DNA of 64,000 nt from Haplodiscus bocki (lineage: Eukaryota): contig OZ296648.1 of assembly GCA_965655095.1 (NCBI GenBank), forward strand, positions 8,494,001 to 8,558,000, read 5' to 3'. The notes beneath the pieces were generated by a model. It searched no databases and was not told the DNA's origin. It saw only the letters and a program-made list of their open reading frames with translations. The translations under genes and the position numbers were made by a program. Of this stretch, positions 36,638-57,332 are shown one piece after another. The first letter of the stretch is position 1, and every line of letters begins with the position of its first letter.

Positions 36638-37620
36638 AATAATATACTATATTGCGGATTTACCGGTAACTCCCCTGCGGGTCCTTACTAATAAATCCGA
36701 CAATATAGCCGTTCCCTACGCTTCGCTTCGGTCACTTATATTATTGCTCAGCTCTTTGAGCTTCGCCTTTCCTGACTCGCTTCTACGAAGCTCGTGGGAT
36801 GCTCGTCTCCGTCTCGCATAACTGATATACAATCACATACCATTATTTTCCACCACATAAAAACCATAGTTGAAATAAGCATGAATGTAAGGAAACGTGT
36901 ATATAAAAATCCACATTTATGTAAACGTAAAATTGTGAAGCAACGGTAAAACGTACTTGCACGTGTATTTTTATGTTAGTATTCTCTTTTCTATTTTGTC
37001 TCCTATAGCAGATCGGTATTTGTAGAATGACATCGATGAAGTTAAGGTATTGCCGCAGTGTTTGGGGTTCGCTGCTTAATACGTATCCCCAGTCGTTTGT
37101 CGTACATTGCCATGATGCTATAGGAGGAACTGTCCATGTCTTAATGCTTGAAAAAGCAGAATAGATCGACGGGGATATCCACCAGGAATGCTCACTCGAA
37201 GACAGCTGAAAAGCTCGACATGAAAGTTGGCCAGTGGATATTTTATCTTATTACGAAAACACGATTTCTGAGAAATATTCACCTTATGCCGACATACCTT
37301 AAACATGTAGAGATTATAAAATTTCAAGCTACAAATACAAATGATATACCATTAGAAAGCTCGTTAAAAGTTTAGTAAACCCTGAAAATTTCAGCTTTGT
37401 ATCTATTACCATCTTCGAGAAAATTGACAAAAACCTAAAATGTCGACATACCTTAAACATGTAGAGATTGTAAAATTTTGAGTTACAACAATGTGTGATA
37501 TACTTTTGGATAGCTTGTTGTAATAATAGTTTACCCTGAAAATTTCAACTTCGTATCTATTATAATTATTTGAATAAAAGTACGATGATTCAGAAATCAT
37601 TGTTAACAATAAAATTATTA
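36638..37620. promoter_or_regulatory. Left terminal non-coding region, putative replication origin (mirrored at 56347-57332)
   Basis: AATAAT terminal repeat, a cluster of GC-richer short hairpins at 36655-36820, and a degenerate direct repeat with ~154-bp period (37290 vs 37444). Confidence 0.55.
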
Positions 37621-37624
37621 TAAA

Positions 37625-37825
37625 TGATGATCGATGATGAGATATATGATTCAGATTTTGATGATTCTGATTTTGAAGATTTAGTTCATAGCGGTAAAGA
37701 TATACAAATTATTTATTTTGATAATATAGAACAATTTCAACAATCTGAAAAAACTTAATATAATTGGTGGGCTTAATCATAATTCAAATATCGCACAATA
37801 TATTATAATCAAACCAGGAAAATAA
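37625..37825 (+). pseudogene. Left-arm copy of the small acidic protein, frameshifted
   Basis: Mirror of 56143-56346 with a 2-bp deletion near 37750. Confidence 0.6.
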
Positions 37826-40800
37826 TTAAGAACTCCTTATTCTTCTATTTCTCATATTTTGATTATGGCATTGTCTACATATAGTTTTGTTTTTAATATA
37901 ATTATCAGGATTTATTACATTTTCACATTTACTACATTTTTTTATTGTATCTTTAACAGGTTTTTCTGTAACAATATTGTCTTCTGTTTGATAATACGGG
38001 AGCATGTAACCTAATTCATTTTCTGGTTTACGCTTTAATTTTTTTATTTCAACAGAGTATATAGCTATACGAGTTATTTTATTTAAACAATCTTTACAAC
38101 TGTTACTTATTTCACATTGAAAACAATTCATTTGAGGTTTAAGTAGGCATGATTTACATAGTTTGTTTTCATTACAAAGTTCACAATACGGTTTACGATG
38201 CGGTATTTTAATTCCGGCAAGTTCCCGTTTCCATTTTAGTTTAGATCTGTTTTCAATTGTTAATCCTTTTTCTAAATCAAGAAAACCTTTAAATGTTATA
38301 TCATTTATATTTTGGTTGAATCCTTTGAAAGTTGTTTTTTGTGATAAAACACCGTTTTCATCTATAACAATACAGTATTTGACTTTTGGAGCTAAAAACA
38401 ATCCATATTTGATACCCGCATTATCACCATAATCATTTTAGATTGCCAAAGACCTTTTCCTATTAAACCATTTTCATCCAAGATATTGTAATCGTTTTTG
38501 TGTATATATACACTATCGGTATCTCCATAGTATATTTTATTGTTTGTGAAACCATCTAATATTAAAATAACATCGTTCATTAATCTTTTTGAATGTGATA
38601 AAATCGTAGAGCCAAATTGAAATGGTTGGCTATTTATCTTTTTAGATATACCATTATCGTCGACACCTTCATGATCTACTATATTAACCATATAATTACC
38701 GTTTTCAAGAGGTATATAATTTTTAACTCTATCATCGTATTCTGTAAGCATCCAATTTTCTGTTACACATTTGTAATTTTCGGTAATATCTTGTCTAATA
38801 CAACTTCCATAACCACCGTTTACGGTATCTTTACACATTAATTGCAATATATTTTTACCTTGATTTTTATATTCATTACGTTTGTCTATCAAATCATGAA
38901 CATATTCGGTAAATGGATTGTAATCTAAATTATCACAGATAAATCCTTCTATAAATTCTAAAATAATACCTCCTATTCTAACAATTTGTTCAATATCAAC
39001 GCTAGTTAAATGCTGAGTTATATGACCATTTCGAAATCTATTTACACGCTCGAATTTGTTTTTTGACTCATTAAAGACTTCTTCGTTAACAGCTGAATGT
39101 TGTAATATTAAGTATTCAGGTTTATAATATTTGACTTTAAAAAATCCGGAATTGTTTAAGTTTTTCCATCCGTTATTGTTAAAGAGATCACATAAATAAT
39201 TACTGTCTTGTTTAGGATTGATAGCTATCGATGTTTCTATTTTAGGCCATGTTGATTTATGACACGACATAGCTGACGGATATAACGATGTATAATCACT
39301 GCTTACTAACAGATCAGACTTATCGATTTTGTTTAATTCTTTCGATATAGGTAAACTTGCTAGTTTTTCGTTAACATATTTTTCTTGTTCTTTAGTATCA
39401 ATTCGTCTATAATCAACATATCTCGATTCGTATTTCTTATTGTAATGTTCACGAACTTTATTGATTTGACGGTAATATATACTGAACAATGTTGATATTT
39501 CTTGATCTTTACCTAAATATTTTTCGAGAATGTCAACTATTTGATTAAAAGAAGACGAAACAAATTTACGGTTCAAAGCAACAACTCTTCCTCCATGTAC
39601 TGTTTTTCTAATGAAATCTCTAACGTATTTATTTTTTGGGGTATAAAACGTTTTTCCTGAAGCCTCCATATATTTACCTAACGTCGACCATGATAACGAC
39701 GATTGTGTTAACGAAGTTTTAAATGAAACACCAGTTATTTTTTGAATTTTGTTAGCGTGTTTAGCAACGAGCATACCTAACCCTAAAACATCATTAATCA
39801 AATACGGTTTCCAAAAACGTTCTTTTTCTGTATAGTTAGATAATGTTATATCACTATGTTCCATTTCAGTCTTTAAAAGTTGTGGTTGTATACCATAATC
39901 TTTTTGAATCTTTCTTAATGATCCTGATATATGTACTTTACTACAGACGAATTTCATGTATTGAGGTATTTCTTTATTATTGTTGTCATAAATAGTACCT
40001 ACTCTAAAAATTAGTTTCAAAATACCTCTAGATGTATGTATTATTTTTGGAAAATATGTTTTCGGGAGAGAATTTAATACAATAACGTTATCGAATCCAG
40101 AAGCGTTATGAGGTATTAGTTGATATTTATAACAAGATATTTTATAATTACCGTCTTTATCTTTGAAAAATTTAGGTTTTCCTTTGTAGTTTCTAACGAT
40201 AAAATTTATCATGTCCATTACAGGGTTTTTGTTTTTATAATCAAAAATGTGAACATTTTCTCTCTCGATTTTTAATTCGTCTTCAGATAAATTACCATTG
40301 TAACACTCCTTTAGACGATTAAGATGATAACAACCGGCAGCATATGGAACACAATATTGTTTATAATCAACGTTAGCTGTTTCAAGGTCAAAAGCAAATA
40401 CGGCATATAGACAATCTTTTTCGTTTGATATAGGAAATTTATATTCTTGAACCTGTTTGAGTATGTTATCAGATATTTGGTTATCTTCATATTTGAAATT
40501 GTCTTCTAATTCTTTTATGGCGTTAGTGAAAGAGGTGTTTTTTGTCTTCCATATCACACAGAAATGATTTTCATGGATAATTAAACAAAGTCTTCGTTCA
40601 GTAACATATCGAGGAAGAATTTCTTGTTGATTTATATTGTAAACACCGAGGTTGATGTTATATTTTTTACAAAATGGTTGAATTTTAGCAGAAGTCTTAA
40701 TGTTTTTGGTTGTTTTACTGTTTTTTATAAAATCATGATATTTTTTAGTAAAATCTTTTTTGTATATGAATTCAAGACATTTTCTGAAACATTCGTTTTC

Positions 40801-41407
40801 TTCAGGAATATAACATAAATTACCTCTATATTCAACAATCTTTTTAAAACTATCACAACCAGTACCATAATATGAACGACGAATTTTATTGAATGATTTG
40901 GTGTATTTAATAACTATTCCTGTAAAAGTGATTGCCACGCTTTCATCATATCTTTCATTGATTTTTTCTATTCTTTCAATCAAAGCATCTCTATTACTAA
41001 AGAAAGCATTTATCATGGAAGATTCTTTATCATTGATTTTTAATTCGCCTTTTAATATAAAAGGATATTCATCTGTTACATTTTCAAGTACCTTTATAAT
41101 ATCATCGTTCTCAAATTTGACTATGTTGTTTTCTATAATATTTAGATATTCTCCCAAATCAATTTCATCGTTATCGAATTTAATATCACTAAAATCGAAC
41201 GGATTAGTCTCACCATAACGCTCATTATCTCGAATTTTTTGGTTAATGTTGTTTAATTCAATTATTTTATTATTATGTCTGGTGACTAATTCGTTTTTGG
41301 AATCGTTTAAAACCTCGTTGTTTCTTGTTTGTGGTGTTTTTTATTTTATTATTTACTATTTCTATTCTGTGTTCCAATAATTCAATCTCTTCGATAATTT
41401 GTTCCAT
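37826..41407 (-). pseudogene. Left-arm pPolB, frameshifted
   Basis: Near-identical to 52558-56142. A 2-bp deletion near 41317 and a 1-bp deletion near 38438 split it into the 921-aa and 191-aa track ORFs. Confidence 0.92.
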
Positions 41408-41507
41408 TTAATAAAATATAAATCGTTGAATTAAAAAATTAAACAGGTTGAAAAAGTAGTATTTTAAATTAATTCATATAAGAATTCAATAATTTATTAT
41501 TAAATAA

Positions 41508-41807
41508 ATGAATGACCAAATACAAATAAATAAAATTTTTCGTCTATGCGGTCATGAAAGAGAGTATGATAACTATCACAGACTATATGTTGCTTGCAAA
41601 AAAAGCGCTAGTAGACGATGTGCTAAACATTATCAGAAAAACAGGGAAAAAATATTAGAAAAAGCTAAATTATATCGAGAAAACAATAAAGATAAATTAA
41701 AACAAAACCGAAAAACAGTTAGTTCATATAAAGATGATATACAAGATCTTTACAATCAGATTAACACCTTAACAGAGATGCTGAAATCTACCACATTAGT
41801 TACTTAG
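41508..41807 (+). CDS. Left-arm copy 1 of the 99-aa Zn-ribbon/basic coiled-coil protein (two Cys lost)
   Basis: Mirror of 52158-52457, with ICRLC changed to IFRLC and CKKC to CKKS. Confidence 0.65.
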   Translation: MNDQIQINKIFRLCGHEREYDNYHRLYVACKKSASRRCAKHYQKNREKILEKAKLYRENNKDKLKQNRKTVSSYKDDIQDLYNQINTLTEMLKSTTLVT

Positions 41808-41902
41808 AATGGTGTTGATTCGAGAATACAAAATAACAACAGAATCGTTAACAGTTCATTTTAAAAAAATAATATTGAAATAATAATTATCTCTTTTTAA
41901 AC

Positions 41903-42638
41903 ATGACAGGCCTGATGTGTCAAGTAACGTGTGCGCCGTGTGATTTAAAAATTGATGAAACGAAGTGGAAGGAACACTTATGTTCTGAAAAACATTTAAA
42001 ATATTGTAAAGGTGCTGACCAAAGTATTGCAATAAAATTCTTTGAAATGATTTTTGCAGCAAATCCAGAAAAAAAAGATATTCAATTCAAAAATTGAAAA
42101 GGCACTCGATTTCTGGCGTTTATATTTTTCGACAAAACTACCAAAAGAGAAATCTGATCTATTATGTAATGATTCATACGATAAAAAGGAAATAGAGAAA
42201 AATCTTGAAACCGATTTCAACGATTTTATATTAAAAGTAGTACCTATTATCGGAAAAAACTATTTTCCTTCATTGAAAGATAAAACATTTTGTGAAATTT
42301 GTAGTGTAGAAGTAAATATAACACTTCTTTATAAACATATTAATTCAAAAGAACACAAGCAAATCGAAAATTACCTTATTAAGAACAGCATGACATATTG
42401 TGAAGTTTGTAAAAAAGAGATAAGAAATGATGAATGGAGAGAACATAATATTTCAGAAAATCACTTAGAGAAAGAACAAAAAAATTATTGTAAAGTTTGT
42501 AAGACGAAATATAGTGTTGTAGGGTATGCGAATTCATATGATAGTTTCCAAGAAAAATGCAGATGGGCTGAAGTTAGTCACACAGCTAACAAGGATCACA
42601 AACTAAATGCAGAGAGATTTGATTTTTATGGTTGTTAA
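41903..42638 (+). CDS. Multi U1/matrin-type C2H2 zinc-finger protein split at an A8 run (copy 1)
   Basis: The 64-aa and 194-aa ORFs overlap at GAAAAAAAAG and carry repeated CxxC...H..S..H fingers. Confidence 0.7.
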
Positions 42639-42676
42639 ATCAGAAAATTTATAATGATGAGTACTTTTGTATATAA

Positions 42677-42967
42677 ATGAATAAAAGATTTTCATACGAT
42701 AATATGATTAAATCACGATCAATAGAACCAAGTGACATAATTAGAACCTTTAAACTAGATCGATGTTGTGATTTTATGGAAGAGAAATACAATAATCCTA
42801 GATTAACTCAAAAAGAAATTTGTAATCAGCTAGGATTTACTGATAGAACTATTAGACGATACAGAGATGATATTAAAATGGATAGTCCTTATAGAATAAA
42901 TAATAACAAAAAGAAAAAACCTAAACAACCAACAGATACTAAATCAGTTCCAAATAAGAAATCTTAA
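42677..42967 (+). CDS. HTH DNA-binding protein (copy 1); reading frame continues past TAA to 43135
   Basis: LTQKEICNQLGFTDRTIRRY helix-turn-helix and a basic KKKKPK patch. Confidence 0.7.
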   Translation: MNKRFSYDNMIKSRSIEPSDIIRTFKLDRCCDFMEEKYNNPRLTQKEICNQLGFTDRTIRRYRDDIKMDSPYRINNNKKKKPKQPTDTKSVPNKKS

Positions 42968-43197
42968 AACAATGTTATAAAAGGTGGTAATGTTTCTGAT
43001 ACCCACACATTATCTGGTAGAGAATTAATCGCTCATACTTTTCAGAATGATAAAGCAGACTCTATTTTAGAAAACAAACAGGAAGATAATAAAAAATATA
43101 TTACTATAGCTAGAAGAATGGTAGATGGTGTTTAAAAACACATATAATTGCATGAATATCAAATATAATTACTCATACACGAGTTTCTTATTATTAA

Positions 43198-43503
43198 ATG
43201 GATAAAATAGAACAAGAAATAAAACAAGATGAAAATACGATAAATGATATAGCAGAGAAATTAGAACTCGTCTCTAACACTAATATGATAACAAAAGAAG
43301 AACTTTTACAGAAATTTGTAGCTAAAGATGTTATAAAAAACAAGATGATTAATGTTGCTGGTCAAATGTTTATAGAATATGAGAAAGAATTAGATAATTC
43401 TAATAAAATAATCAAAGGATACGAAGATTATATCGGAGATGATAAAATCAGAAAGGATATATTAGATAACGTTTGTGGATTAAACAAAGTCTTCGTTCAG
43501 TAA
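43198..43503 (+). pseudogene. Truncated copy of the 131-aa helical protein at the duplication junction
   Basis: Nearly identical to 46094-46489 up to ...VCG, then reads into pPolB antisense. Confidence 0.8.
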
Positions 43504-44307
43504 CATATCGAGGAAGAATTTCTTGTTGATTTATATTGTAAACACCGAGGTTGATGTTATATTTTTTACAAAATGGTTGAATTTTAGCAGAAGTCATAAT
43601 GTTTTTGGTTGTTTTACTGTTTTTTATAGAAATCATGATATTTTTTAGTAAAATCTTTTTTGTATATGAATTCAAGACATTTTCTGAAACATTCGTTTTC
43701 TTCAGGAATATAACATAAATTACCTCTATATTCAACAATCTTTTTAAAACTATCACAACCAGTACGATAATATGAACGACGAATTTTATTGAATGATTTG
43801 CTGTATTTAATAACTATTCCTTTAAAAGTGATTGGCACGCTTTCATCATATCTTTCATTGATTTTTTCTATTCTTTCAATCAAAGCATCTCTTTTACTAA
43901 AGAAAGCATTTATCATGGAAGATTCTTTATCATTGATTTTTAATTCGCCTTTTAATATAAGAGGATATTCATCTGTTACATTTTCAAGTACCTTTATAAT
44001 ATCATCGTTCTCAAATTTGACTATGTTGTTTTCTATAATATTTAGATATTCTCCCAAATCAATTTCATCGTTATCGAATTTAATATCACTAAAATCAAAC
44101 GGATTAGTCTCACCATAACGCTCATTATCTCGAATTTTTTGGTTAATGTTGTTTAATTCAATTATTTTATTATTATGTCTGGTGACTAATTCGTTTTTGG
44201 AATCGTTTAAAACCTCGTTGTTTCTTGTTTGTGGTGTTTTTTATTTTATTATTTACTATTTCTATTCTGTGTTCCAATAATTCAATCTCTTCGATAATTT
44301 GTTCCAT
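43480..44307 (-). pseudogene. 5' fragment of pPolB in the duplicated unit
   Basis: N-terminal ~275 codons only, with frameshifts near 44217 and 43625. Confidence 0.88.
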
Positions 44308-44407
44308 TTAATAAAATATAAATCGTTGAATTAAAAAATTAAACAGGTTGAAAAAGTAGTATTTTAAATTAATTCATATAAGAATTCAATAAATTATTAT
44401 TAAATAA

Positions 44408-44703
44408 ATGAATGACCAAATACAAATAAATAAAATTTGTCGTCTATGCGGTCATGAAAGAGTATGATAACTATCACAGACTATATGTTGCTTGCAAAAA
44501 AAGCGCTAGTAGACGATGTGCTAAACATTATCAGAAAAACAGGGAAAAAATATTAGAAAAAGCTAAATTATATCGAGAAAACAATAAAGATAAATTAAAA
44601 CAAAACCGAAAAAGTTAGTTCATATAAAGATGATATACAAGATCTTTACAAACAGATTAACACCTTAACAGAGATGCTGAAATCTACCACATTAGTTACT
44701 TAG
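44408..44703 (+). pseudogene. Left-arm copy 2 of the 99-aa protein, frameshifted
   Basis: 2-bp deletions near 44460 and 44613 relative to the other copies. Confidence 0.75.
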
Positions 44704-44798
44704 AATGGTGTTGATTCGAGAATACAAAATAACAACAGAATCGTTAACAGTTCATTTTAAAAAAATAATATTGAAATAATAATTATCTCTTTTTAAAC

Positions 44799-45534
44799 AT
44801 GACAGGCCTGATGTGTCAAGTAACGTGTGCGCCGTGTGATTTAAAAATTGATGAAACGAAGTGGAAGGAACACTTATGTTCTGAAAAACATTTAAAATAT
44901 TGTAAAGGTGCTGACCAAAGTATTGCAATAAAATTCTTTGAAATGATTTTTGCAGCAAATCCAGAAAAAAAAGATATTCAATTTAAAAAATGAAAAGGCA
45001 CTCGATTTCTGGCGTTTATATTTTTCGACAAAACTACCAAAAGAGAAATCTGATCTATTATGTAATGATTCATACGATAAAAAGGAAATAGAGAAAAATC
45101 TTGAAACCGATTTCAACGATTTTATATTAAAAGTAGTACCTATTATCGGAAAAAACTATTTTCCTTCATTGAAAGATAAAACATTTTGTGAAATTTGTAG
45201 TGTAGAAGTAAATATAACACTTCTTTATAAACATATTAATTCAAAAGAACACAAGCAAATCGAAAATTACCTTATTAAGAACAGCATGACATATTGTGAA
45301 GTTTGTAAAAAAGAGATAAGAAATGATGAATGGAGAGAACATAATATTTCAGAAAATCACTTAGAGAAAGAACAAAAAAATTATTGTAAAGTTTGTAAGA
45401 CGAAATATAGTGTTGTAGGGTATGCGAATTCATATGATAGTTTCCAAGAAAAATGCAGATGGGCTGAAGTTAGTCACACAGCTAACAAGGATCACAAACT
45501 AAATGCAGAGAGATTTGATTTTTATGGTTGTTAA
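44799..45534 (+). CDS. Multi C2H2 zinc-finger protein split at an A8 run (copy 2)
   Basis: Same structure as 41903-42638 and 51327-52062. Confidence 0.7.
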
Positions 45535-45572
45535 ATCAGAAAATTTATAATGATGAGTACTTTTGTATATAA

Positions 45573-47859: not shown

Positions 47860-47860
47860 G

Positions 47861-48330: not shown

Positions 48331-48390
48331 TCAAAGATTATTCCAAAACAGATAAGTATAATTAAAATTACACAAATTGTTACATGAGCT

Positions 48391-48497
48391 TATATTTCGG
48401 ACAGGGGCGGACACATTGTAATTATATAAGTGTGATAATGCAAAATATATATACAATTATTTGTTTATTCTAGTGTCGGCGCAGTGTCGGAAATTTG
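48391..48497. other. 107-nt central spacer of the palindrome, itself an imperfect hairpin
   Basis: Perfect arm symmetry stops at ...TACATGAGCT (48390) and resumes at AGCTCATGTA (48498). Inside, ATTTCGGACA pairs with TGTCGGAAAT, CGGACAC with GTGTCGG and ATAAGTGT with ACAATTAT, each with a mismatch. Confidence 0.85.
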
Positions 48498-48557
48498 AGC
48501 TCATGTAACAATTTGTGTAATTTTAATTATACTTATCTGTTTTGGAATAATCTTTGA

Positions 48558-48997
48558 CATTAATCTTGTTCGATCATAATACTTTTAACATAATCTTGTT
48601 CGATCATAATACTTTTAACATAATCTTGTTCGATCAAATACTTTATACATAAATCTTATTCAAATTTTTTATACAAATATCTTGTTCGATCAAAATACTT
48701 TATACATAAATCTTGTTCGATCAAAATACTTTAAACATAATCTTGTTCAATCAAAATACTTTTAACATAAGTCTTGTTCGATCAAATATTTTAAATAAAA
48801 ATCTTGTTTGAATAAAATACTTTTAACAAAATCTTGTTCAATCAAATACTTTATACAAAAATCTTGTTCGATCAAATACTTTAAACATAAATCTTGTTCG
48901 ATCAAATACTTTAAACATAAATCTTGTTCGATCAAAATACTTTAAACATAAATCTTGGCCGATCAAATACTTTTAACAAAAATCTGGCTAGATCAAA
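48558..48997 (-). repeat. Inverted copy of the ~30-bp tandem array (~15 units), right of centre
   Basis: Reverse complement of 47861-48330 with unit gain/loss. Confidence 0.92.
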
Positions 48998-48998
48998 T

Positions 48999-49541
48999 TT
49001 AATCAAGATACTTGTATTTTAAAAGTATCTTACAAACTCTTTCATCGAAATAATCCAAATCTTTTAGTTTGTTTAGATTATTCTCGTATTGTTTTTCTTC
49101 TCTCATAGTTATTCTATTATTTTTTATTTTATCGTGTAGCATTCTATTTTTAGTTAGAATTCTATTTATTTTATCTTGAGTTTTTATATCTAAATTATTT
49201 ATTTTATCTTTTATTAATTTTTTATAATTATTAAGATATAGACCATCTCCTATTGTTGGATATAAAGGTTCGTTATTTTCATCTGTAATATTATTTTTGT
49301 CTGTCTTATTAGAAGTACTATTGTTCTTGACTGTCTTATTAGAAGTACTATTATTGTAAGTACAAACGTAAGTACTATGTCTCTGCTTTATGTGTTTGGA
49401 TAAATTAGTACTATTAAATTCCTTATCACAATAACCACATTTAACTTTTTTATTTAAACAATGTTTACAAAAACTTTTCTTATAGGAATAGAAATTATCA
49501 ATCTCTAAATCTCTTTTACAAGCATTGCAGTACTTCAGCAT
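48999..49541 (-). CDS. 180-aa C4 + C2H2 zinc-finger protein (right arm)
   Basis: CNAC...CKHC and CGYC...HIKQRH; intact in both arms. Confidence 0.7.
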   Translation of the reverse strand: MLKYCNACKRDLEIDNFYSYKKSFCKHCLNKKVKCGYCDKEFNSTNLSKHIKQRHSTYVCTYNNSTSNKTVKNNSTSNKTDKNNITDENNEPLYPTIGDGLYLNNYKKLIKDKINNLDIKTQDKINRILTKNRMLHDKIKNNRITMREEKQYENNLNKLKDLDYFDERVCKILLKYKYLD

Positions 49542-49640
49542 GGTTATTTAAATCAATGAAAACTGTATTATTCAGATATTTTGAAATTTCTAATCACTAT
49601 TACTTATTCATAATTGAAATAAATTATCTGAATTAATAAA

Positions 49641-50048
49641 ATGTATTGTGCTCAAAACAACAGAATTTACTGTAGTGATTGTAATAAATCTTATATTCCT
49701 AATAATTATTCGAATCATTTGAAATCCAAAGGACATTATATTAATGTTATGAAAAAAAGTTGTAATAATCATGATCTCACATGTAGTATGAATAAGCTAT
49801 CTCTTGAATCGAATGATAGCGTAAAAACAGACTTTTCAAACGTTAAAAATATTACAAAAAGTAACCAAACAAAAGTAAAACATAATGGTTCTGAAATTTT
49901 GTTATTAAGACTCTGTAATCAGGAGGATAGAGAATCAATTATAGAAGATAAAGCAGTGTTAGAAAAGTTATATAGTGTTATGGGAATAACTTTGGGAGAA
50001 TATGTCTTTTGCCAAGGTGGGTATGCATATATAAGGATAAAGATATGA
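49641..50048 (+). CDS. 135-aa U1/matrin-type C2H2 finger protein (right arm)
   Basis: CSDC...HLKSKGH; TAAAATG start; divergent from the 180-aa gene across 99 bp. Confidence 0.7.
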   Translation: MYCAQNNRIYCSDCNKSYIPNNYSNHLKSKGHYINVMKKSCNNHDLTCSMNKLSLESNDSVKTDFSNVKNITKSNQTKVKHNGSEILLLRLCNQEDRESIIEDKAVLEKLYSVMGITLGEYVFCQGGYAYIRIKI

Positions 50049-50082
50049 ACTAAAAATTGAAAAAATTTATCTTAATAATAAA

Positions 50083-50244
50083 ATGCCTTGTACACAAAAC
50101 AGAATTTATTGTGGTGTTTGTCATATATCTGTTTTACCTGACAATTATCAAAACCATTTTAGATCTCAAGGACATGCTAGTAACGTTTTAAAAAACTCGT
50201 GTACTAATTCAATGATAATAAAAACACATAATAAGAAAAGATAA
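50083..50244 (+). CDS. 53-aa C2H2 finger protein, paralog of the 135-aa N-terminus (below ORF-track cutoff)
   Basis: MPCTQNRIYCGVCHISVLPDNYQNHFRSQGH aligns with MYCAQNNRIYCSDCNKSYIPNNYSNHLKSKGH. Same upstream motif. Confidence 0.65.
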   Translation: MPCTQNRIYCGVCHISVLPDNYQNHFRSQGHASNVLKNSCTNSMIIKTHNKKR

Positions 50245-50418
50245 ATGAAAACAGAAATTGTTAACAATATAGCAAACGAAGCAATATATCAATTACAATA
50301 TTATAAAAATCTATATCATTCACATAAAAAGATTAATAAAATATTATTTTTGATACTTTTTTCAATATTAATTATTTGTTTGATAGCATTTCTCGTTTAT
50401 TATTATTTAAAATTTTAA
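50245..50418 (+). CDS. 57-aa tail-anchored membrane protein candidate (below ORF-track cutoff)
   Basis: MKTEIVNNIANEAIYQLQYYKNLYHSHKKINKILFLILFSILIICLIAFLVYYYLKF. The ATG directly follows the previous stop (TAA-ATG). Confidence 0.45.
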   Translation: MKTEIVNNIANEAIYQLQYYKNLYHSHKKINKILFLILFSILIICLIAFLVYYYLKF

Positions 50419-50767
50419 TAAATCTGTTAATAGAATTATTTTTATAAACTTCATCTTTCTCAGAACAAACTTCTTTTACGTTATCTCCACAAACTTTATC
50501 TAATATATCCTTTCTGATTTTATCATCTCCGATATAATCTTCGTATCCTTTGATTATTTTATTAGAATTATCTAATTCTTTCTCATATTCTATAAACATT
50601 TGACCAGCAACATTAATCATCTTGTTTTTTATAACATCTTTAGCTACAAATTTCTGTAAAAGTTCTTCTTTTGTTACCATGTTAGTGTTAGAGACGAGTT
50701 CTAATTTCTCTGCCATATCATTTATCGTATTTTCATCTTGTTTTATTTCTTGTTCTATTTTATCCAT
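50372..50767 (-). CDS. 131-aa helical protein, unknown function (right arm)
   Basis: TAAATG start; conserved in both arms. Confidence 0.65.
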   Translation of the reverse strand: MDKIEQEIKQDENTINDMAEKLELVSNTNMVTKEELLQKFVAKDVIKNKMINVAGQMFIEYEKELDNSNKIIKGYEDYIGDDKIRKDILDKVCGDNVKEVCSEKDEVYKNNSINRFIKILNNNKREMLSNK

Positions 50768-50997
50768 TTAATAATAAGAAACTCGTGTATGAGTAATTAT
50801 ATTTGATGTTCATGCAATTATATGTGTTTTTAAACACCATCTACCATTCTTCTAGCTATAGTAATATATTTTTTATTATCTTCCTGTTTGTTTTCTAAAA
50901 TAGAGTCTGCTTTATCATTCTGAAAAGTATGAGCGATTAATTCTCTACCAGATAATGTGTGGGTATCAGAAACATTACCACCTTTTATAACATTGTT

Positions 50998-51288
50998 TTA
51001 AGATTTCTTATTTGGAACTGATTTAGTATCTGTTGGTTGTTTAGGTTTTTTCTTTTTGTTATTATTTATTCTATAAGGACTATCCATTTTAATATCATCT
51101 CTGTATCGTCTAATAGTTCTATCAGTAAATCCTAGCTGATTACAAATTTCTTTTTGAGTTAATCTAGGATTATTGTATTTCTCTTCCATAAAATCACAAC
51201 ATCGATCTAGTTTAAAGGTTCTAATTATGTCACTTGGTTCTATTGATCGTGATTTAATCATATTATCGTATGAAAATCTTTTATTCAT
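50998..51288 (-). CDS. HTH protein (right arm); frame continues past TAA to 50830
   Basis: HTH motif LTQKEICNQLGFTDRTIRRY; TAAATG start. Confidence 0.7.
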   Translation of the reverse strand: MNKRFSYDNMIKSRSIEPSDIIRTFKLDRCCDFMEEKYNNPRLTQKEICNQLGFTDRTIRRYRDDIKMDSPYRINNNKKKKPKQPTDTKSVPNKKS

Positions 51289-51326
51289 TTATATACAAAA
51301 GTACTCATCATTATAAATTTTCTGAT

Positions 51327-52062
51327 TTAACAACCATAAAAATCAAATCTCTCTGCATTTAGTTTGTGATCCTTGTTAGCTGTGTGACTAACTTCAGCCC
51401 ATCTGCATTTTTCTTGGAAACTATCATATGAATTCGCATACCCTACAACACTATATTTCGTCTTACAAACTTTACAATAATTTTTTTGTTCTTTCTCTAA
51501 GTGATTTTCTGAAATATTATGTTCTCTCCATTCATCATTTCTTATCTCTTTTTTACAAACTTCACAATATGTCATGCTGTTCTTAATAAGGTAATTTTCG
51601 ATTTGCTTGTGTTCTTTTGAATTAATATGTTTATAAAGAAGTGTTATATTTACTTCTACACTACAAATTTCACAAAATGTTTTATCTTTCAATGAAGGAA
51701 AATAGTTTTTTCCGATAATAGGTACTACTTTTAATATAAAATCGTTGAAATCGGTTTCAAGATTTTTCTCTATTTCCTTTTTATCGTATGAATCATTACA
51801 TAATAGATCAGATTTCTCTTTTGGTAGTTTTGTCGAAAAATATAAACGCCAGAAATCGAGTGCCTTTTCATTTTTTAAATTGAATATCTTTTTTTTCTGG
51901 ATTTGCTGCAAAAATCATTTCAAAGAATTTTATTGCAATACTTTGGTCAGCACCTTTACAATATTTTAAATGTTTTTCAGAACATAAGTGTTCCTTCCAC
52001 TTCGTTTCATCAATTTTTAAATCACACGGCGCACACGTTACTTGACACATCAGGCCTGTCAT
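51327..52062 (-). CDS. Multi U1/matrin-type C2H2 finger protein split at an A8 run (right arm)
   Basis: CAPC..WKEHLCSEKH, CEIC..KHINSKEH, CEVC..WREHNISENH and CKVC..HTANKDH. Confidence 0.7.
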
Positions 52063-52157
52063 GTTTAAAAAGAGATAATTATTATTTCAATATTATTTTT
52101 TTAAAATGAACTGTTAACGATTCTGTTGTTATTTTGTATTCTCGAATCAACACCATT

Positions 52158-52457
52158 CTAAGTAACTAATGTGGTAGATTTCAGCATCTCTGTTAAGGTG
52201 TTAATCTGATTGTAAAGATCTTGTATATCATCTTTATATAAACTAACTGTTTTTCGGTTTTGTTTTAATTTATCTTTATTGTTTTCTCGATATAATTCAG
52301 CTTTTTCTAATATTTTTTCCCTGTTTTTCTGATAATGTTTAGCACATCGTCTACTAGCGCATTTTTTGCAAGCAACATATAGTCTGTGATAGTTATCATA
52401 CTCTCTTTCATGACCGCATAGACGACAAATTTTATTTATTTGTATTTGGTCATTCAT
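52158..52457 (-). CDS. 99-aa Zn-ribbon/basic coiled-coil protein (right arm, intact)
   Basis: CRLC...CKKC followed by YQKNREKILEKAELYRENNKDK; TAAATG start; divergent from pPolB across 100 bp. Confidence 0.7.
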   Translation of the reverse strand: MNDQIQINKICRLCGHEREYDNYHRLYVACKKCASRRCAKHYQKNREKILEKAELYRENNKDKLKQNRKTVSLYKDDIQDLYNQINTLTEMLKSTTLVT

Positions 52458-52557
52458 TTATTTAATAATAATTTATTGAATTCTTATATGAATTAATTTA
52501 AAATACTACTTTTTCAACCTGTTTAATTTTTTAATTCAACGATTTATATTTTATTAA

Positions 52558-55500
52558 ATGGAACAAATTATCGAAGAGATTGAATTATTGGAACACAGAA
52601 TAGAAATAGTTAATATTAAAATAAAAAACACCACAAACAAGAAACAACTCGAGGTTTTAAACGATTCCAAAAACGAATTAGTCACCAGACATAATAATAA
52701 AATAATTGAATTAAACAACATTAACCAAAAAATTCGAGATATTGAGCGTTATGGTGAGACTAATCCGTTTGATTTTAGTGATATTAAATTCGATAACGAT
52801 GAAATTGATTTGGGAGAATATCTAAATATTATAGAAAACAACATAGTCAAATTTGAGAACGATGATATTATAAAGGTACTTGAAAATGTAACAGATGAAT
52901 ATCCTTTTATATTAAAAGGCGAATTAAAAATCAATGATAAAGAATCTTCCATGATAAATGCTTTCTTTAGTAATAGAGATGCTTTGATTGAAAGAATAGA
53001 AAAAATCAATGAAAGATATGATGAAAGCGTGCCAATCACTTTTAAAGGAATAGTTATTAAATACAGCAAATCATTCAATAAAATTCGTCGTTCATATTAT
53101 GGTACTGGTTGTGATAGTTTTAAAAAGATTGTTGAATATAGAGGTAATTTATGTTATATTCCTGAAGAAAACGAATGTTTCAGAAAATGTCTTGAATTCA
53201 TATACAAAAAAGATTTTACTAAAAAATATCATGATTTTATAAAAAACAGTAAAACAACCAAAAACATTATGACTTCTGCTAAAATTCAACCATTTTGTAA
53301 AAAATATAACATCAACCTCGGTGTTTACAATATAAATCAACAAGAAATTCTTCCTCGATATGTTACTGAACGAAGACTTTGTTTAATTATCCATGAAAAT
53401 CATTTCTGTGTGATATGGAAGACAAAAAACACCTCTTTCACTAACGCCATAAAAGAATTAGAAGACAATTTCAAATATGAAGATAACCAAATATCTGATA
53501 ACATACTCAAACAGGTTCAAGAATATAAATTTCCTATATCAAACGAAAAAGATTGTCTATATGCCGTATTTGCTTTTGACCTTGAAACAGCTAACGTTGA
53601 TTATAAACAATATTGTGTTCCATATGCTGCCGGTTGTTATCATCTTAATCTTCTAAAGGAGTGTTACAATGGTAATTTATCTGAAGACGATATAAAAATC
53701 GAGAGAGAAAATGTTCACATTTTTGATTATAAAAACAAAAACCCTTTAATGGACATGATAAATTTTATCGTTAAAAACTACAAAGGAAAACCTAAATTTT
53801 TCAAAGATAAAGACGGTAATTATAAAATATCTTGTTATAAATATCAACTAATAGCTCATAACGCTTCTGGATTCGATAACGTTATTGTATTAAATTCTCT
53901 CCCGAAAACATATTTTCCAAAAATAATACATACATCTAGAGGTATTTTGAAACTAAGTTTTAGAGTAGGTACTATTTATGACAACAATAATAAAGAAATA
54001 CCTCAATACATGAAATTCGTCTGTAGTAAAGTACATATATCAGGATCATTAAGAAAGATTCAAAAAGATTATGGTATACAACCACAACTTTTAAAGACTG
54101 AAATGGAACATAGTGATATAACATTATCTAACTATACAGAAAAAGAACGTTTTTGGAAACCGTATTTGATTAATGATGTTTTAGGGTTAGGTATGCTCGT
54201 TGCTAAACACGCTAACAAAATTCAAAAAATAACTGGTGTTTCATTTAAAACTTCGTTAACACAATCGTCGTTATCATGGTCGACGTTAGGTAAATATATG
54301 GAGGCTTCAGGAAAAACGTTTTATACCCCAAAAAATAAATACGTTAGAGATTTCATTAGAAAAACAGTACATGGAGGAAGAGTTGTTGCTTTGAACCGTA
54401 AATTTGTTTCGTCTTCTTTTAATCAAATAGTTGACATTCTCGAAAAATATTTAGGTAAAGATCAAGAAATATCAACATTGTTCAGTATATATTACCGTCA
54501 AATCAATAAAGTTCGTGAACATTACAATAAGAAATACGAATCGAGATATGTTGATTATAGACGAATTGATACTAAAGAACAAGAAAAATATGTTAACGAA
54601 AAACTAGCAAGTTTACCTATATCGAAAGAATTAAACAAAATCGATAAGTCTGATCTGTTAGTAAGCAGTGATTATACATCGTTATATCCGTCAGCTATGT
54701 CGTGTCATAAATCAACATGGCCTAAAATCGAAACATCGATAGCTATCAATCCTAAACAAGACAGTAATTATTTATGTGATCTCTTTAACAATAACGGATG
54801 GAAAAACTTAAACAATTCCGGATTTTTTAAAGTCAAATATTATAATCCTGAATACTTAATATTACAACATTCAGCTGTTAACGAAGAAGTCTTTAATGAG
54901 TCAAAAAACAAAATCGAGCGTGTAAATAGATTTCGAAATGGTCATATAACTCAGCATTTAACTAGCGTTGATATTGAACAAATTGTTAGAATAGGAGGTA
55001 TTATTTTAGAATTTATAGAAGGATTTATCTGTGATAATTTAGATTACAATCCATTTACCGAATATGTTCATGATTTGATAGACAAACGTAATGAATATAA
55101 AAATCAAGGTAAAAATATATTGCAATTAATGTTTAAAGATACCGTAAACGGTGGTTATGGAAGTTGTATTAGACAAGATATTACCGAAAATTACAAATGT
55201 GTAACAGAAAATTGGATGCTTACAGAATACGATGATAGAGTTAAAAATTATATACCTCTTGAAAACGGTAATTATATGGTTAATATAGTAGATCATGAAG
55301 GTGTCGACGATAATGGTATATCTAAAAAGATAAATAGCCAACCATTTCAATTTGGCTCTACGATTTTATCACATTCAAAAAGATTAATGAACGATGTTAT
55401 TTTAACATTAGATGGTTTCAAAAACAATAAAATATACTATGGAGATACCGATAGTGTATATATACACAAAAACGATTACAATATCTTGGATGAAAATGGT

Positions 55501-56142
55501 TTAATAGGACAAGGTCTTTGGCAATCTAAAAATGATTATGGTGATAATGCGGGTATCATATATGGATTGTTTTTAGCTCCAAAAGTCAAATACTGTATTG
55601 TTATAGATGAAAACGGTGTATTTTCACAAAAAACAACTTTCAAAGGATTCAACCAAAATATAAATGATATAACATTTAAAGGTTTTCTTGATTTAGAAAA
55701 AGGATTAACAATTGAAAACAGATCTAAACTAAAATGGAAACGGGAACTTGCCGGAATTAAAATACCGCATCGTAAACCGTATTGTGAACTTTGTAATGAA
55801 AACAAACTATGTAAATCATGCCTACTTAAACCTCAAATGAATTGTTTTCAATGTGAAATAAGTAAAAGTTGTAAAGATTGTTTAAATAAAATAACTCGTA
55901 TAGCTATATACTCTGTTGAAATAAATAAATTAAAGCGTAAACCAGAAAATGAATTAGGTTACATGCTCCCGTATTATCAAACAGAAGACAATATTGTTAC
56001 AGAAAAACCTGTTAAAGATACAATAAAAAAATGTAGTAAATGTGAAAATGTAATAAATCCTGATAATTGTATTAAAAACAAAACTATATGTAGACAATGC
56101 CATAATCAAAATATGAGAAATAGAAGAATAAGGAGTTCTTAA
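52558..56142 (+). CDS. polB: Protein-primed family B DNA polymerase (pPolB), 1194 aa, intact
   Basis: ExoI FAFDLET (D341/E343), ExoII HNASGFD (D440), ExoIII YLIND (D540), HGGRV, motif A SSDYTSLYPSAM (D705), motif B KDTVNGGYG (K860), motif C YGDTDS (D963/D965) and FLAPKVKY. No introns. Confidence 0.95.
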   Translation: MEQIIEEIELLEHRIEIVNIKIKNTTNKKQLEVLNDSKNELVTRHNNKIIELNNINQKIRDIERYGETNPFDFSDIKFDNDEIDLGEYLNIIENNIVKFENDDIIKVLENVTDEYPFILKGELKINDKESSMINAFFSNRDALIERIEKINERYDESVPITFKGIVIKYSKSFNKIRRSYYGTGCDSFKKIVEYRGNLCYIPEENECFRKCLEFIYKKDFTKKYHDFIKNSKTTKNIMTSAKIQPFCKKYNINLGVYNINQQEILPRYVTERRLCLIIHENHFCVIWKTKNTSFTNAIKELEDNFKYEDNQISDNILKQVQEYKFPISNEKDCLYAVFAFDLETANVDYKQYCVPYAAGCYHLNLLKECYNGNLSEDDIKIERENVHIFDYKNKNPLMDMINFIVKNYKGKPKFFKDKDGNYKISCYKYQLIAHNASGFDNVIVLNSLPKTYFPKIIHTSRGILKLSFRVGTIYDNNNKEIPQYMKFVCSKVHISGSLRKIQKDYGIQPQLLKTEMEHSDITLSNYTEKERFWKPYLINDVLGLGMLVAKHANKIQKITGVSFKTSLTQSSLSWSTLGKYMEASGKTFYTPKNKYVRDFIRKTVHGGRVVALNRKFVSSSFNQIVDILEKYLGKDQEISTLFSIYYRQINKVREHYNKKYESRYVDYRRIDTKEQEKYVNEKLASLPISKELNKIDKSDLLVSSDYTSLYPSAMSCHKSTWPKIETSIAINPKQDSNYLCDLFNNNGWKNLNNSGFFKVKYYNPEYLILQHSAVNEEVFNESKNKIERVNRFRNGHITQHLTSVDIEQIVRIGGIILEFIEGFICDNLDYNPFTEYVHDLIDKRNEYKNQGKNILQLMFKDTVNGGYGSCIRQDITENYKCVTENWMLTEYDDRVKNYIPLENGNYMVNIVDHEGVDDNGISKKINSQPFQFGSTILSHSKRLMNDVILTLDGFKNNKIYYGDTDSVYIHKNDYNILDENGLIGQGLWQSKNDYGDNAGIIYGLFLAPKVKYCIVIDENGVFSQKTTFKGFNQNINDITFKGFLDLEKGLTIENRSKLKWKRELAGIKIPHRKPYCELCNENKLCKSCLLKPQMNCFQCEISKSCKDCLNKITRIAIYSVEINKLKRKPENELGYMLPYYQTEDNIVTEKPVKDTIKKCSKCENVINPDNCIKNKTICRQCHNQNMRNRRIRSS

Positions 56143-56343
56143 TTATTTTCCTGGTTTGATTATAATATATTGTGCGATATTTGAATTATGATTAAACCCA
56201 CCAATTATATTAAGTTCTTTTTCAGATTGTTGAAATTGTTCTATATTATCAAAATAAATAATTTGTATATCTTTACCGCTATGAACTAAATCTTCAAAAT
56301 CAGAATCATCAAAATCTGAATCATATATCTCATCATCGATCAT
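56143..56343 (-). CDS. Small acidic protein (~66 aa), tail-to-tail with pPolB
   Basis: MIDDEIYDSDFDDSDFED... Its stop codon abuts the pPolB stop. The left-arm copy starts at TAAATG. Confidence 0.55.
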   Translation of the reverse strand: MIDDEIYDSDFDDSDFEDLVHSGKDIQIIYFDNIEQFQQSEKELNIIGGFNHNSNIAQYIIIKPGK

Positions 56344-57332
56344 CAATTATAATAATTTTATTGTTAACAATGATTTCTGAATCATCGTACTTTTATTCTA
56401 ATAATTATAATAGATACGAAGTTGAAATTTTCAGGGTAAACTAATATTACAACAAGCTATCCGAAAGTATATCACACATTGTTGTAACTCAAAATTTTAC
56501 AATCTCTACATGTTTAAGGTATGTCGACATTTTAGGTTTTTGTCAATTTTCTCGAAGATGGTAATAGATACAAAGCTGAAATTTTCAGGGTTTACTAAAC
56601 TTTTAACGAGCTTTCTAATGGTATATCATTTGTATTTGTAGCTTGAAATTTTATAATCTCTACATGTTTAAGGTGTGTCGACATAATGTGAATATTTCTC
56701 AGAAATCGTGTTTTCGTAATAAGATAAAATATCCACTGGCCAACTTTCATGTCGAGCTTTTCAGCTGTCTTCGAGTGAGCATTCCTGGTGGATATCCCCG
56801 TCGATCTATTCTGCTTTTTCAAGCATTAAGACATGGACAGTTCCTCCTATAGCATCATGGCAATGTACGACAAACGACTGGGGATACGTATTAAGCAGCG
56901 AACCCCAAACACTGCGGCAATACCTTAACTTCATCGATGTCATTCTACAAATACCGATCTGCTATAGGAGACAAAATAGAAAAGAGAATACTAACATAAA
57001 AATACACGTGCAAGTACGTTTTACCGTTGCTTCACAATTTTACGTTTACATAAATGTGGATTTTTATATACACGTTTCCTTACATTCATGCTTATTTCAA
57101 CTATGGTTTTTATGTGGTGGAAAATAATGGTATGTGATTGTATATCAGTTATGCGAGACGGAGACGAGCATCCCACGAGCTTCGTAGAAGCGAGTCAGGA
57201 AAGGCGAAGCTCAAAGAGCTGAGCAATAATATAAGTGACCGAAGCGAAGCGTAGGGAACGGCTATATTGTCGGATTTATTAGTAAGGACCCGCAGGGGAG
57301 TTACTGGTAAATCCGCAATATAGTATATTATT

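Follow-up and report, generated by a model that had tools for sequence, protein, structure and literature searches.

Can a virus-like element consist of little more than its own inverted repeats, and how could such an element be copied and inserted? This question is raised by an insertion of 20.7 kb found in a 64,000-nucleotide stretch of the Haplodiscus bocki genome (the window hereafter). The original prediction described it as a giant palindrome carrying a protein-primed PolB and about nine compact genes in each arm, and proposed that it was the integrated form of a fold-back linear replicon with no described counterpart. No description of this layout was found in the literature either.

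Structure of the palindromic element

The palindrome described in the original prediction is real. The two inverted arms match in blocks of 96–99% complementarity. By megablast, the outer 6.85 kb is 99.2% identical (49 mismatches, 5 gap positions) and the inner 4.85 kb is 98.0% identical. The left arm measures 11.8 kb because a 2.9-kb segment is tandemly duplicated. The unique centre is 81 nt between the innermost matched blocks, or about 100–107 nt if the imperfect GC-rich inverted repeat around it is counted. The GC content of the element is 26% against 39% in the flanks, and falls from about 0.39 to 0.24–0.30 exactly at the ends, which are bordered by a 6-bp target-site duplication (TSD). 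The element contains no N. The coordinates of its components are collected in Table 1.

Table 1. Components of the palindromic element, in window coordinates
Feature	Position	Strand	Other copies	Description and support
Whole element	36638..57332			20,695 bp; about 17.8 kb without the left-arm duplication; inverted-repeat blocks, GC drop, sharp ends
Left TSD	36632..36637			GCAGTG
Right TSD	57333..57338			GCAGTG
Left arm	36638..48403			Includes the 2.9-kb tandem duplication, about 40580-43479 and 43479-46375
Right arm	48485..57332			8,848 nt, the less disturbed copy
Central core	48404..48484			Non-palindromic, AT-rich, bracketed by an imperfect GC-rich inverted repeat; folds with z = -5.6
Centre-proximal array, left arm	47861..48331			About 15.7 copies of a 30-bp tandem repeat
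Centre-proximal array, right arm	48553..48998			About 14.9 copies of a 30-bp tandem repeat
Polymerase, right arm	52558..56142	+		Protein-primed-type family-B DNA polymerase, intact, 1194 aa; N-terminal ~330-aa conserved Cys/His region of unknown function, Cys-rich C-terminal tail
Polymerase, left arm	37826..41407	-		Broken by two frame-changing indels, no premature stops relative to the right-arm copy
Polymerase fragment	43479..44307	-		Partial 5' fragment inside the duplicated segment
o99	52158..52457	-	41508-41807(+); 44408-44703(+), the latter with one frame-changing indel	Four-Cys zinc-ribbon plus coiled-coil protein, divergent from the polymerase gene
Zinc-finger gene	51327..52062	-	41903-42638(+); 44799-45534(+)	Four CxxC...H modules; two overlapping ORFs (one frame change) in all three copies; dN/dS about 0.2
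o96	50998..51288	-	42677-42967(+); 45573-45863(+)	Small helix-turn-helix (HTH) protein, from weak HTH hits; dN/dS 0.06-0.20
o131	50372..50767	-	46094-46489(+); partial 43198-43479(+)	All-helical orphan protein, the most conserved gene of the family; 88-96% aa identity across copies; dN/dS 0.05-0.12
o57	50245..50418	+	46443-46613(-)	Small hydrophobic ORF
o53	50083..50244	+	46614-46775(-)	Single zinc-finger module, paralogous to the N-terminus of o135
o135	49641..50048	+	46810-47217(-)	Zinc-finger protein; weaker constraint (dN/dS 0.5-0.9)
o180	48999..49541	-	47317-47859(+)	Innermost gene, N-terminal C2H2-like zinc finger
o67	56143..56346	-	37625-37825(+), with one frame-changing indel	Small acidic protein directly after the polymerase gene; dN/dS 0.07-0.19
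Subterminal direct repeats	56408..56684		37286-37562	~154-bp repeats
Terminal fold-back	57225..57332		36638-36745	~108 nt including the last base; z = -5.2; the element starts 5'-AATAAT

A family of palindromic copies

Palindromic chimeras are a known artefact of long reads, and the structure could in principle reflect a fold-back read or a local inverted duplication at this one locus. Three contigs (carrying copies L003, L006 and L007) end at or near the centre of a copy, which shows that the assembler struggles there, and the 2.9-kb duplication in the left arm could be an assembly error. However, the palindrome lies inside a 438-kb contig with unique flanks on both sides, and its arms differ by more than 100 substitutions. 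All the copies come from one long-read assembly and were judged from the assembled sequence alone, but an artefact or a single rearrangement is, in practice, refuted by the further copies examined, their TSDs and their shared core.

The same assembly holds hundreds of copies. The polymerase cluster at ≥90% identity has 153 members on many contigs, and the databases contain 646 o131 and 152 o180 proteins, almost all from one ENA assembly. Five further two-armed copies (L002, L003, L016, L017 and L018), lying on other contigs, were examined, and all of them are palindromic. The original prediction had named all other family members being ordinary short-TIR Polintons as an outcome that would refute it, and this was not what was found. 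Independent TSDs were present where both ends could be read, namely in the complete copies L016 (GACACG) and L018 (GTTGTC). The core is homologous, with the same asymmetry, in the window, L002, L003, L016 and L017 (five of the six elements), and is shared by copies only 75–80% alike.

Single-arm copies also exist, showing that the palindrome is not the only integrated form. L005 starts within about 20 nt of the core edge, and L009, which at first looked like a palindrome with a different centre, proved to be a single arm that ends less than 1 kb from the centre.

Outside this assembly, scans of IMG/VR viral contigs with the polymerase and o131 profiles found no relative. A scan of JGI metagenomes detected only short fragments, the best being 61% and 45% identical, the latter from a Cyphastrea coral metagenome. 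An exhaustive profile search with o131 returned only family fragments.

Gene content

Ten genes were counted per arm: the polymerase and nine small genes. The right-arm polymerase matches Pfam DNA_pol_B_2 (PF03175; E 7e-13, 48.6 bits against a cut-off of 25.8), and its exonuclease and polymerase motif residues are invariant among 18 relatives. Most of the genes are under purifying selection (dN/dS 0.05–0.3), including the polymerase (0.14–0.17). The zinc-finger gene, which is split in the window, is an uninterrupted 245-aa ORF in L002 and L007.

Polintons by definition encode a retrovirus-like (rve/DDE) integrase (PMC5499653), and their morphogenetic module comprises a double-jelly-roll major capsid protein, a minor capsid protein, a packaging ATPase and a maturation protease. 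None of these was found in the element by Pfam, PHROGs or NCBIfam searches, nor by tblastn with every protein of two classical Polintons of the same assembly (L004 and L008). The integrases of both gave no match in the whole window, and the only match to an ATPase protein is a 31-aa Cys-rich stretch inside the polymerase tail. NCBIfam and further Pfam scans of the small ORFs gave nothing above cut-off, and Rfam found nothing in the window.

Solved-structure searches with the polymerase alone and with an 18-sequence profile gave no significant hit. AlphaFold models of the polymerase (pLDDT 47.6) and of o131 (47.8) were too poor to use. Foldseek placed phi29 polymerase on top, but at E 7e-3 with TM below 0.2, which is not significant with so poor a model. 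No separate terminal-protein gene was recognized, and the ~330-aa N-terminal extension of the polymerase is of unknown fold. The termini begin with a reiterated trinucleotide (AAT AAT or AGT AGT), the kind of terminal reiteration used for sliding or jumping back in protein-primed replication.

The absence of recognizable folds in several small ORFs means that an unrecognized integration function cannot be excluded. In a fully autonomous element, one of the orphan genes (o131, o180, the 245-aa zinc-finger protein, o99, or the N-terminal Cys/His region of the polymerase) would be an integrase or end-processing enzyme, and no helper would be needed. The purifying selection on unannotated accessory genes and the great abundance of the family favour this view, as does a PHROG hit of o99 to "endonuclease VII" (2e-7). 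However, a profile of six o99 homologues hit only coiled-coil proteins among solved structures, and o99 is also present in the classical Polinton L004. No protein is long enough or shows a DDE-like match. A 6-bp TSD is the hallmark of Polinton rve integrases, and the termini and subterminal repeats match those of co-resident integrase-encoding Polintons far better than the genes do, the pattern seen in non-autonomous elements. Full autonomy is therefore considered unlikely.

Relationship with co-resident Polintons

Classical Polintons lie in the same genome. L004 encodes rve (46.5 bits) and DJR (41.5 bits), both above cut-off, and L008 encodes Pox_A32, DJR and rve. Their polymerases are 45% and 38% identical in protein, respectively, to that of the palindromic element, while the subterminal repeats are 74–92% identical in nucleotides to L004 and L008. 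The gene o99, next to the polymerase, is the only small gene shared with a classical Polinton (L004). The last ~26 nt, nearly identical, and the terminal fold-back are shared with L008. The palindromes measure 16.3–17.8 kb, against at least 15.2 and at least 14.6 kb for the classical Polintons, so they are compatible with the same capsid.

The interpretation given in the original prediction is thus only partly supported. The architecture is real, was integrated as one unit and is heritable, but this is not an isolated new class: it is a derivative of the Polintons/Mavericks that co-reside in the same genome. The missing integrase and capsid are most simply supplied in trans. This inference rests on the absence of genes plus shared termini, with the left end of neither helper readable, and only the terminus of the window subfamily was matched to a helper (L008), no partner being identified for the other two terminal types.

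Concerted evolution of the arms and models of replication

In all five elements tested, the two arms of an element are each other's closest relatives: an element's own arms are 91.6–98.8% identical, against 74–92% between elements. This suggests that arms are regenerated from one another during replication, and it fits a fold-back or copy-back step. The evidence is indirect, since concerted evolution could also come from gene conversion or mismatch repair.

The explanation favoured here, with moderate confidence, is that the element is one young copy of a large family derived from Polintons/Mavericks. The family would have kept only the polymerase-side half of the genome (terminus, subterminal repeats, polymerase and o99), added its own set of small zinc-finger, HTH and orphan genes, and come to exist as a head-to-head inverted dimer of that half. 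The analysis establishes that the palindrome is the unit that integrates with a 6-bp duplication, that the layout and its asymmetric centre are inherited across diverged subfamilies, that the genes evolve under purifying selection, that integrase and capsid genes are absent, that complete Polintons with matching termini live in the same genome, and that the arms of any one element evolve in concert. The mechanism, by contrast, is inferred from integrated copies. The element would replicate itself by protein-primed strand displacement from its two identical ends, and a displaced or nascent strand would fold or copy back at the centre, so that one arm templates the other, as in snap-back defective viral genomes, keeping the arms identical. 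The same terminus at both ends would let the rve integrase, and probably the capsid, of a helper Polinton act on it in trans. No free, episomal, hairpin or encapsidated form has been seen, and both this mobilization and packaging by a helper remain inferences. Functionally, it would be a satellite or defective-interfering-like lineage that became a stable family of its own.

A related possibility is that the unit genome is a monomer, an ~8–9-kb duplex closed by a hairpin at the "centre" end with a protein-primed terminus at the other. The palindrome would then be its dimeric replicative form, like a poxvirus concatemer junction or a parvovirus dimer, and would get integrated because it is the only form with two integrase-competent ends. 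The core is an imperfect, AT-rich palindrome of ~100 nt, as expected for the duplex copy of an incompletely paired hairpin loop, the arms are near-identical at insertion, and the break points of L005 and L009 lie at or near the centre. However, these two single-arm copies are equally explained by centre-break deletion of unstable palindromes, no resolvase or nicking function was identified, and no free forms have been observed. This model, which differs from the favoured one only in which form is the resting genome, is regarded as possible but doubtful.

Alternatively, the duplex palindrome could have arisen once by accident and be replicated end to end without any fold-back, the arms staying alike through recombination, gene conversion or mismatch repair. 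A duplex with two identical origins can, in principle, be copied like any protein-primed linear genome, and module-wise differences in dS show frequent recombination in the family. Nevertheless, a full-length displaced strand that is self-complementary over 8.9 kb is expected to fold back much faster than it pairs with another molecule. In addition, the arms are closest relatives even though subfamilies have diverged by up to 25%, which needs very efficient homogenization. This alternative seems unlikely.

Comparison with related systems

The element shares with Polintons/Mavericks the polymerase type, the 6-bp TSD, terminal inverted repeats, the cis sequences indicated above, AT-rich, compact, intronless genes and a similar overall size. 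It differs in lacking the integrase and the morphogenetic genes, in its own accessory gene set (o131, o96, zinc-finger proteins) and in inverted repeats that are the whole genome (arms of 8–8.9 kb) and not up to about 1 kb. Lacking the mobilizing enzyme while sharing terminal cis sequences with an autonomous element of the same genome, it matches in these respects a non-autonomous derivative, as MITEs are to their transposons or satellites to helper viruses.

Snap-back genomes are defined as fully palindromic (PMC13506859). Like them, the element is an inverted duplication of one genome end (only the polymerase-side terminus is present, at both ends) around a short unique centre, which keeps the replication origin and would depend on a helper for the missing functions. 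Inverted-duplication DNA is also reported from incomplete adenovirus particles. Defective genomes, however, are transient by-products that usually lose coding capacity, whereas this lineage keeps an intact polymerase and about nine genes under purifying selection, has diversified into subfamilies and is integrated in a host germline in hundreds of copies.

Replication modules can act as independent mobile elements, and transpovirons and capsid-less pPolB linear plasmids (fungal/plant mitochondrial and yeast cytoplasmic plasmids) are replication modules of the Polinton-like virus world that live without a morphogenetic module (bioRxiv 10.64898/2026.10.13.758929). They are linear, with TIRs and protein priming, but their TIRs range from tens of bp to about 1.4 kb. 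Plasmids usually also carry an RNA polymerase and are not integrated with TSDs, and transpovirons carry their own transposase. None is known to be a whole-genome palindrome.

Hairpin-telomere replicons (poxviruses, parvoviruses) have dimer or concatemer junctions with an imperfect AT-rich palindrome of about 100 nt between two mirror-image genome copies, one strand templating the other arm. Terminal hairpins in endogenous virophages/PLVs have been discussed (bioRxiv 10.64898/2026.07.28.741278). These replicons self-prime from hairpins and resolve junctions with dedicated nickases or resolvases, while the outer ends here are protein-primed-type termini and no resolvase is recognized. The giant rDNA minichromosomes of ciliates and slime moulds are also perfect palindromes of ~20 kb with a short non-palindromic centre flanked by short inverted repeats, generated from a single-copy template by fold-back, but they are host gene amplicons with telomeres, without polymerase, mobility or TSD. 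Foldback (FB) transposons consist almost entirely of long inverted arms, but these are tandem-repeat arrays without a polymerase, give 9-bp TSDs and are unrelated in sequence.

Biological significance

A bolder reading, about as likely as not, is that of a previously undescribed kind of eukaryotic mobile element: a self-replicating, capsid-less and integrase-less pPolB replicon whose heritable information is a single ~8–9-kb arm plus loop. It would propagate as a snap-back palindrome, keep its own conserved gene set and repeatedly swap termini to parasitize different helper Polintons, in effect an evolutionarily stable "defective-interfering" lineage of an animal DNA virus, fixed in a germline.

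The family would show that the replication module of Polintons can live as a selfish element of its own in an animal genome, an idea so far supported mainly by transpovirons and by mosaic genomes in protists. It would also be a natural case in which a snap-back palindromic genome, normally a short-lived defective by-product, became a long-lived, diversifying lineage with genes under selection. The replication of Polintons is not known to have been observed, and a family whose arms evolve in concert and whose centre looks like an unfolded hairpin gives sequence-level predictions about protein-primed strand displacement in a eukaryotic nucleus. Furthermore, hundreds of 16–18-kb palindromes are a notable source of genome instability, of assembly breaks and probably of double-stranded RNA for host silencing pathways. 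Finally, the terminal swaps between close relatives offer a readable record of helper–satellite coevolution.

Structure of the Palindrome

The repeat analysis shows that the element is one long inverted repeat, broken into blocks only by small indels and one duplication, with arms that are 96–99% complementary block by block. By megablast, the outer 6.85 kb of the arms is 99.2% identical (49 mismatches), while the inner 4.85 kb is 98.0% identical. The right arm comprises 8,848 nt, whereas the left arm is 2.9 kb longer because one segment is present twice in tandem. Between the innermost matched blocks lie 81 nt, although about 100–107 nt are not strictly palindromic when the imperfect GC-rich inverted repeat around them is counted. 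Arrays of a 30-bp repeat are found beside this centre.

The GC content falls from about 0.39 to 0.24–0.30 exactly at the two ends, the hexamer GCAGTG flanks the element on both sides, and the sequence contains no Ns. The description of the element in the original prediction, as two long inverted arms around a short unique centre with sharp ends and a 6-bp duplication, is accurate.

Coordinates of the features in the window and in related loci of the same assembly
Locus	Coordinates	Strand	Feature
Window	36638-57332		Whole inverted-repeat element
Window	36638-48403		Left arm
Window	48485-57332		Right arm
Window	48404-48484		Sequence between the innermost matched blocks
Window	50486-53387		Right-arm equivalent of the segment present twice in tandem in the left arm
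Window	57098-57332 and 36638-36872		Terminal segments that differ from those of L005 and L006
Window	about 55900-56120		Cys-rich C-terminal tail of the polymerase
Window	47503-47573 and 49285-49355		30-nt repeat (2.4 copies) inside the o180 coding sequence
Window	1703-3971	-	Three adjacent ORFs, remnant of a non-LTR retrotransposon
Window	22261-23001	+	ORF with a short glycosyl-hydrolase-47 match
L004	16500-23972		Second Polinton-like element, tail-to-tail with the first
L004	15088-15213		Near-perfect hairpin with 61-nt arms (z = -18)
L005	about 6440-14950		Single-arm copy
L009	about 3400-11700		Single-arm copy
L009	1-3000		Flank of 52-54% GC

Gene Content

The right arm carries an intact ORF of 1194 aa that matches Pfam DNA_pol_B_2, the organellar/viral protein-primed type, above the curated cut-off. 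In an alignment of 18 relatives, the residues of the exonuclease and polymerase motifs are invariant. The Cys-rich tail of this polymerase shares a stretch of 31 aa (45% identity, E 8e-5) with the ATPase-like protein of L004, a locus with a classical Polinton in the same assembly, so that the two proteins carry a common zinc-finger module.

From the terminus inward, the other genes of each arm are o67, a small acidic protein; o99, a four-Cys zinc ribbon plus coiled coil that is divergent from the polymerase gene; a zinc-finger gene with four CxxC...H modules, which is one ORF of 245 aa in the related loci L002 and L007 and reads as two overlapping ORFs here; o96, a predicted helix-turn-helix protein; o131, a helical orphan; and o57, o53, o135 and o180, the last three having paralogous zinc-finger N-termini. 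The repeat inside o180 gives a repeated Asn/Ser/Thr-rich peptide, and the length of o180 varies from 163 to 230 aa among copies.

No integrase, capsid protein, ATPase or protease was found in searches with Pfam, PHROGs or NCBIfam. Furthermore, tblastn of every protein of two classical Polintons against the whole window hit only the polymerase and o99. As to the state of the copies, the left-arm polymerase has two frame-changing indels, the left-arm o67 has one and the inner duplicate of o99 has one, while the 245-aa zinc-finger gene shows one frame change in all three copies. All the other genes are intact in both arms.

Genomic Surroundings

The window is part of a 438-kb contig of ENA assembly ERZ26859043. 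The flanks of the element are ORF-poor eukaryotic DNA, with a non-LTR retrotransposon remnant, in which one of the ORFs has an endonuclease-reverse-transcriptase domain (Exo_endo_phos_2, 8.8e-12), and an ORF matching a GH47 mannosidase, probably an exon of a host gene. The flanks of related copies carry a P450 fragment and a BEL/Pao-type gag domain. Outside this assembly, the nearest polymerase relatives are short contigs from JGI metagenomes, one of which, Ga0126343, is a Cyphastrea stony-coral metagenome. An animal host, probably a cnidarian, is inferred, and nothing suggests human sequence.

A Family of Inherited Palindromes

The 90%-identity cluster of the polymerase has 153 members on many contigs, whereas o131 and o180 have 646 and 152 database proteins, respectively. 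Eleven further loci were read. L002 (polymerase 71% identical), L003 (70%), L016, L017 and L018 are two-armed palindromes with the same gene order. L016 (16.3 kb, arms 96.5%) and L018 (16.5 kb, arms 98.8%) could be read at both ends and have their own 6-bp duplications, GACACG and GTTGTC.

The contigs of L003, L006 and L007 terminate at or within about 1.5 kb of a palindrome centre, which fits assembly trouble at palindromes, and these elements are probably a systematic cause of contig breaks in this assembly. By contrast, L005 and L009 hold one arm only, with no inverted partner within 6 kb; L005 starts within about 20 nt of the core edge and L009 ends less than 1 kb from the centre. The L009 contig, which is also present in NCBI, has 18x coverage, and its flank has a higher GC content than the 36–43% GC found elsewhere, where coverage is 40–65x. 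It may represent a different compartment, haplotype or organism.

The non-palindromic core is homologous, with the same left-right asymmetry, in the window element, L002, L003, L016 and L017, although these copies are otherwise only 75–90% identical, while L018 has a different core. The palindrome with this centre thus predates the split of the subfamilies. The possibility of a one-off rearrangement, which had been set beforehand as the condition that would overturn the original prediction, is answered by these copies, and an artefact or a single rearrangement is practically excluded by them together with the structure of the window element itself.

Divergence Under Constraint

The lineage diverged while functional, as indicated by the dN/dS values between the window element and five other copies. 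For one and the same pair of copies, dS differs several-fold between modules; for example, it is 1.2 in the polymerase against 0.3–0.5 in the small genes. The subfamilies therefore recombine.

dN/dS of the genes between the window element and five other copies
Gene	dN/dS
polymerase	0.14-0.17
o131	0.05-0.12
o96	0.06-0.20
o67	0.07-0.19
zinc-finger gene (closer copies)	about 0.2
o99	0.15-0.47
o135, o180	0.3-0.9

Relation to Polintons

Classical Polintons are found in the same assembly. L004 has a polymerase that is 45% identical, an o99 homologue next to it, rve integrase (46.5 bits), a double-jelly-roll (DJR) capsid protein (41.5 bits) and an AAA ATPase, while L008 has a polymerase that is 38% identical, a Pox_A32-type ATPase, a DJR capsid protein and rve. 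The second Polinton-like element of L004 has rve and capsid homologues (72–83% nucleotide identity to the first) and an o99-like fragment, but carries small unrelated ORFs where the polymerase would be. It may be a polymerase-less counterpart of the polymerase-only family.

Although the polymerases of L004 and L008 are only 45% and 38% identical to that of the window element, the non-coding subterminal ~154-bp repeats of the window element are 74–92% identical in nucleotides to those of L004 and L008. The window copy differs from its closest relatives in its last ~235 nt, yet exactly that segment matches the end of L008, with the last ~26 nt almost identical and a ~110-nt terminal fold-back of the same design. 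The hairpin of L004 lies just inside the presumed terminus of the classical Polinton; it is analogous to the ~108-nt terminal fold-back of the window element and is absent from the AGTAGT-type termini. Moreover, copies whose polymerase is 92% identical to that of the window element end in a different ~100-nt terminus, as seen in L005 and L006, which indicates a terminal swap. Three terminal types occur in the family (AATAATATAC, AATAATAAAC-like and AGTAGTT).

A gene-poor element that shares ends, but not genes, with a complete element in the same genome is the usual signature of mobilisation in trans. Polintons are defined by polymerase plus integrase (PMC5499653), and this family therefore falls outside the definition while clearly deriving from them. 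However, full autonomy through an unrecognised integrase cannot be excluded, because several ORFs are orphans and the structure models failed. Short terminal palindromes in endogenous virophages and Polinton-like viruses have been described (bioRxiv 10.64898/2026.07.28.741278), as have mosaic replication modules, but no Polinton relative whose whole genome is a palindrome and which lacks integrase and capsid was found in the literature searched.

Concerted Evolution of the Arms and Proposed Mechanism

In all five two-armed elements compared, the two arms are each other's closest relatives, with identities of 98.5, 91.6, 96.5, 94.9 and 98.8%, while different elements are 74–92% identical. Since the palindrome is older than the subfamilies, the arms must be made alike again and again during propagation and then drift apart after each insertion, in which case the arm divergence of 1–8% simply dates the insertions. 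This is what a fold-back or copy-back step predicts, in which one arm is the template for the other, although gene conversion in a folded strand would give the same pattern.

The original prediction read the element as the integrated form of a fold-back linear replicon of no described class, and this interpretation is partly supported. The architecture, its inheritance across subfamilies, the constraint on the genes, the ends shared with co-resident Polintons and the likeness of the arms come directly from the sequences, whereas protein priming at the ends, the fold-back step, and integration and packaging by a helper are inferred from integrated copies alone.

In the proposed mechanism, the two identical ends would be protein-primed origins. 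All termini begin with a reiterated trinucleotide, AAT AAT or AGT AGT, the kind of reiteration used for sliding or jumping back in protein-primed replication. Strand displacement would release a strand that is self-complementary over 8–9 kb and snaps back, or the polymerase would copy back at the centre, and completing the strand would regenerate a duplex palindrome with identical arms. The imperfect, AT-rich core of ~100 nt is what the duplex copy of an incompletely paired hairpin loop would look like. The integrated copies are compatible with a resting genome that is either the duplex palindrome or a hairpin-closed monomer, and the two single-arm copies are compatible with monomer capture or with centre-break deletion.

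The duplex palindrome has the helper-type terminus at both ends and a size of 16.3–17.8 kb, close to that of the classical Polintons (at least 15.2 and at least 14.6 kb). In this view, the integrase of the helper could therefore insert it with a 6-bp duplication, and its capsid could plausibly hold it. The inverted-duplication DNA reported from incomplete adenovirus particles also matches this scheme. The proposed mechanism matches the concept of snap-back defective genomes (PMC13506859) and that of replication modules living as mobile elements (bioRxiv 10.64898/2026.10.13.758929).
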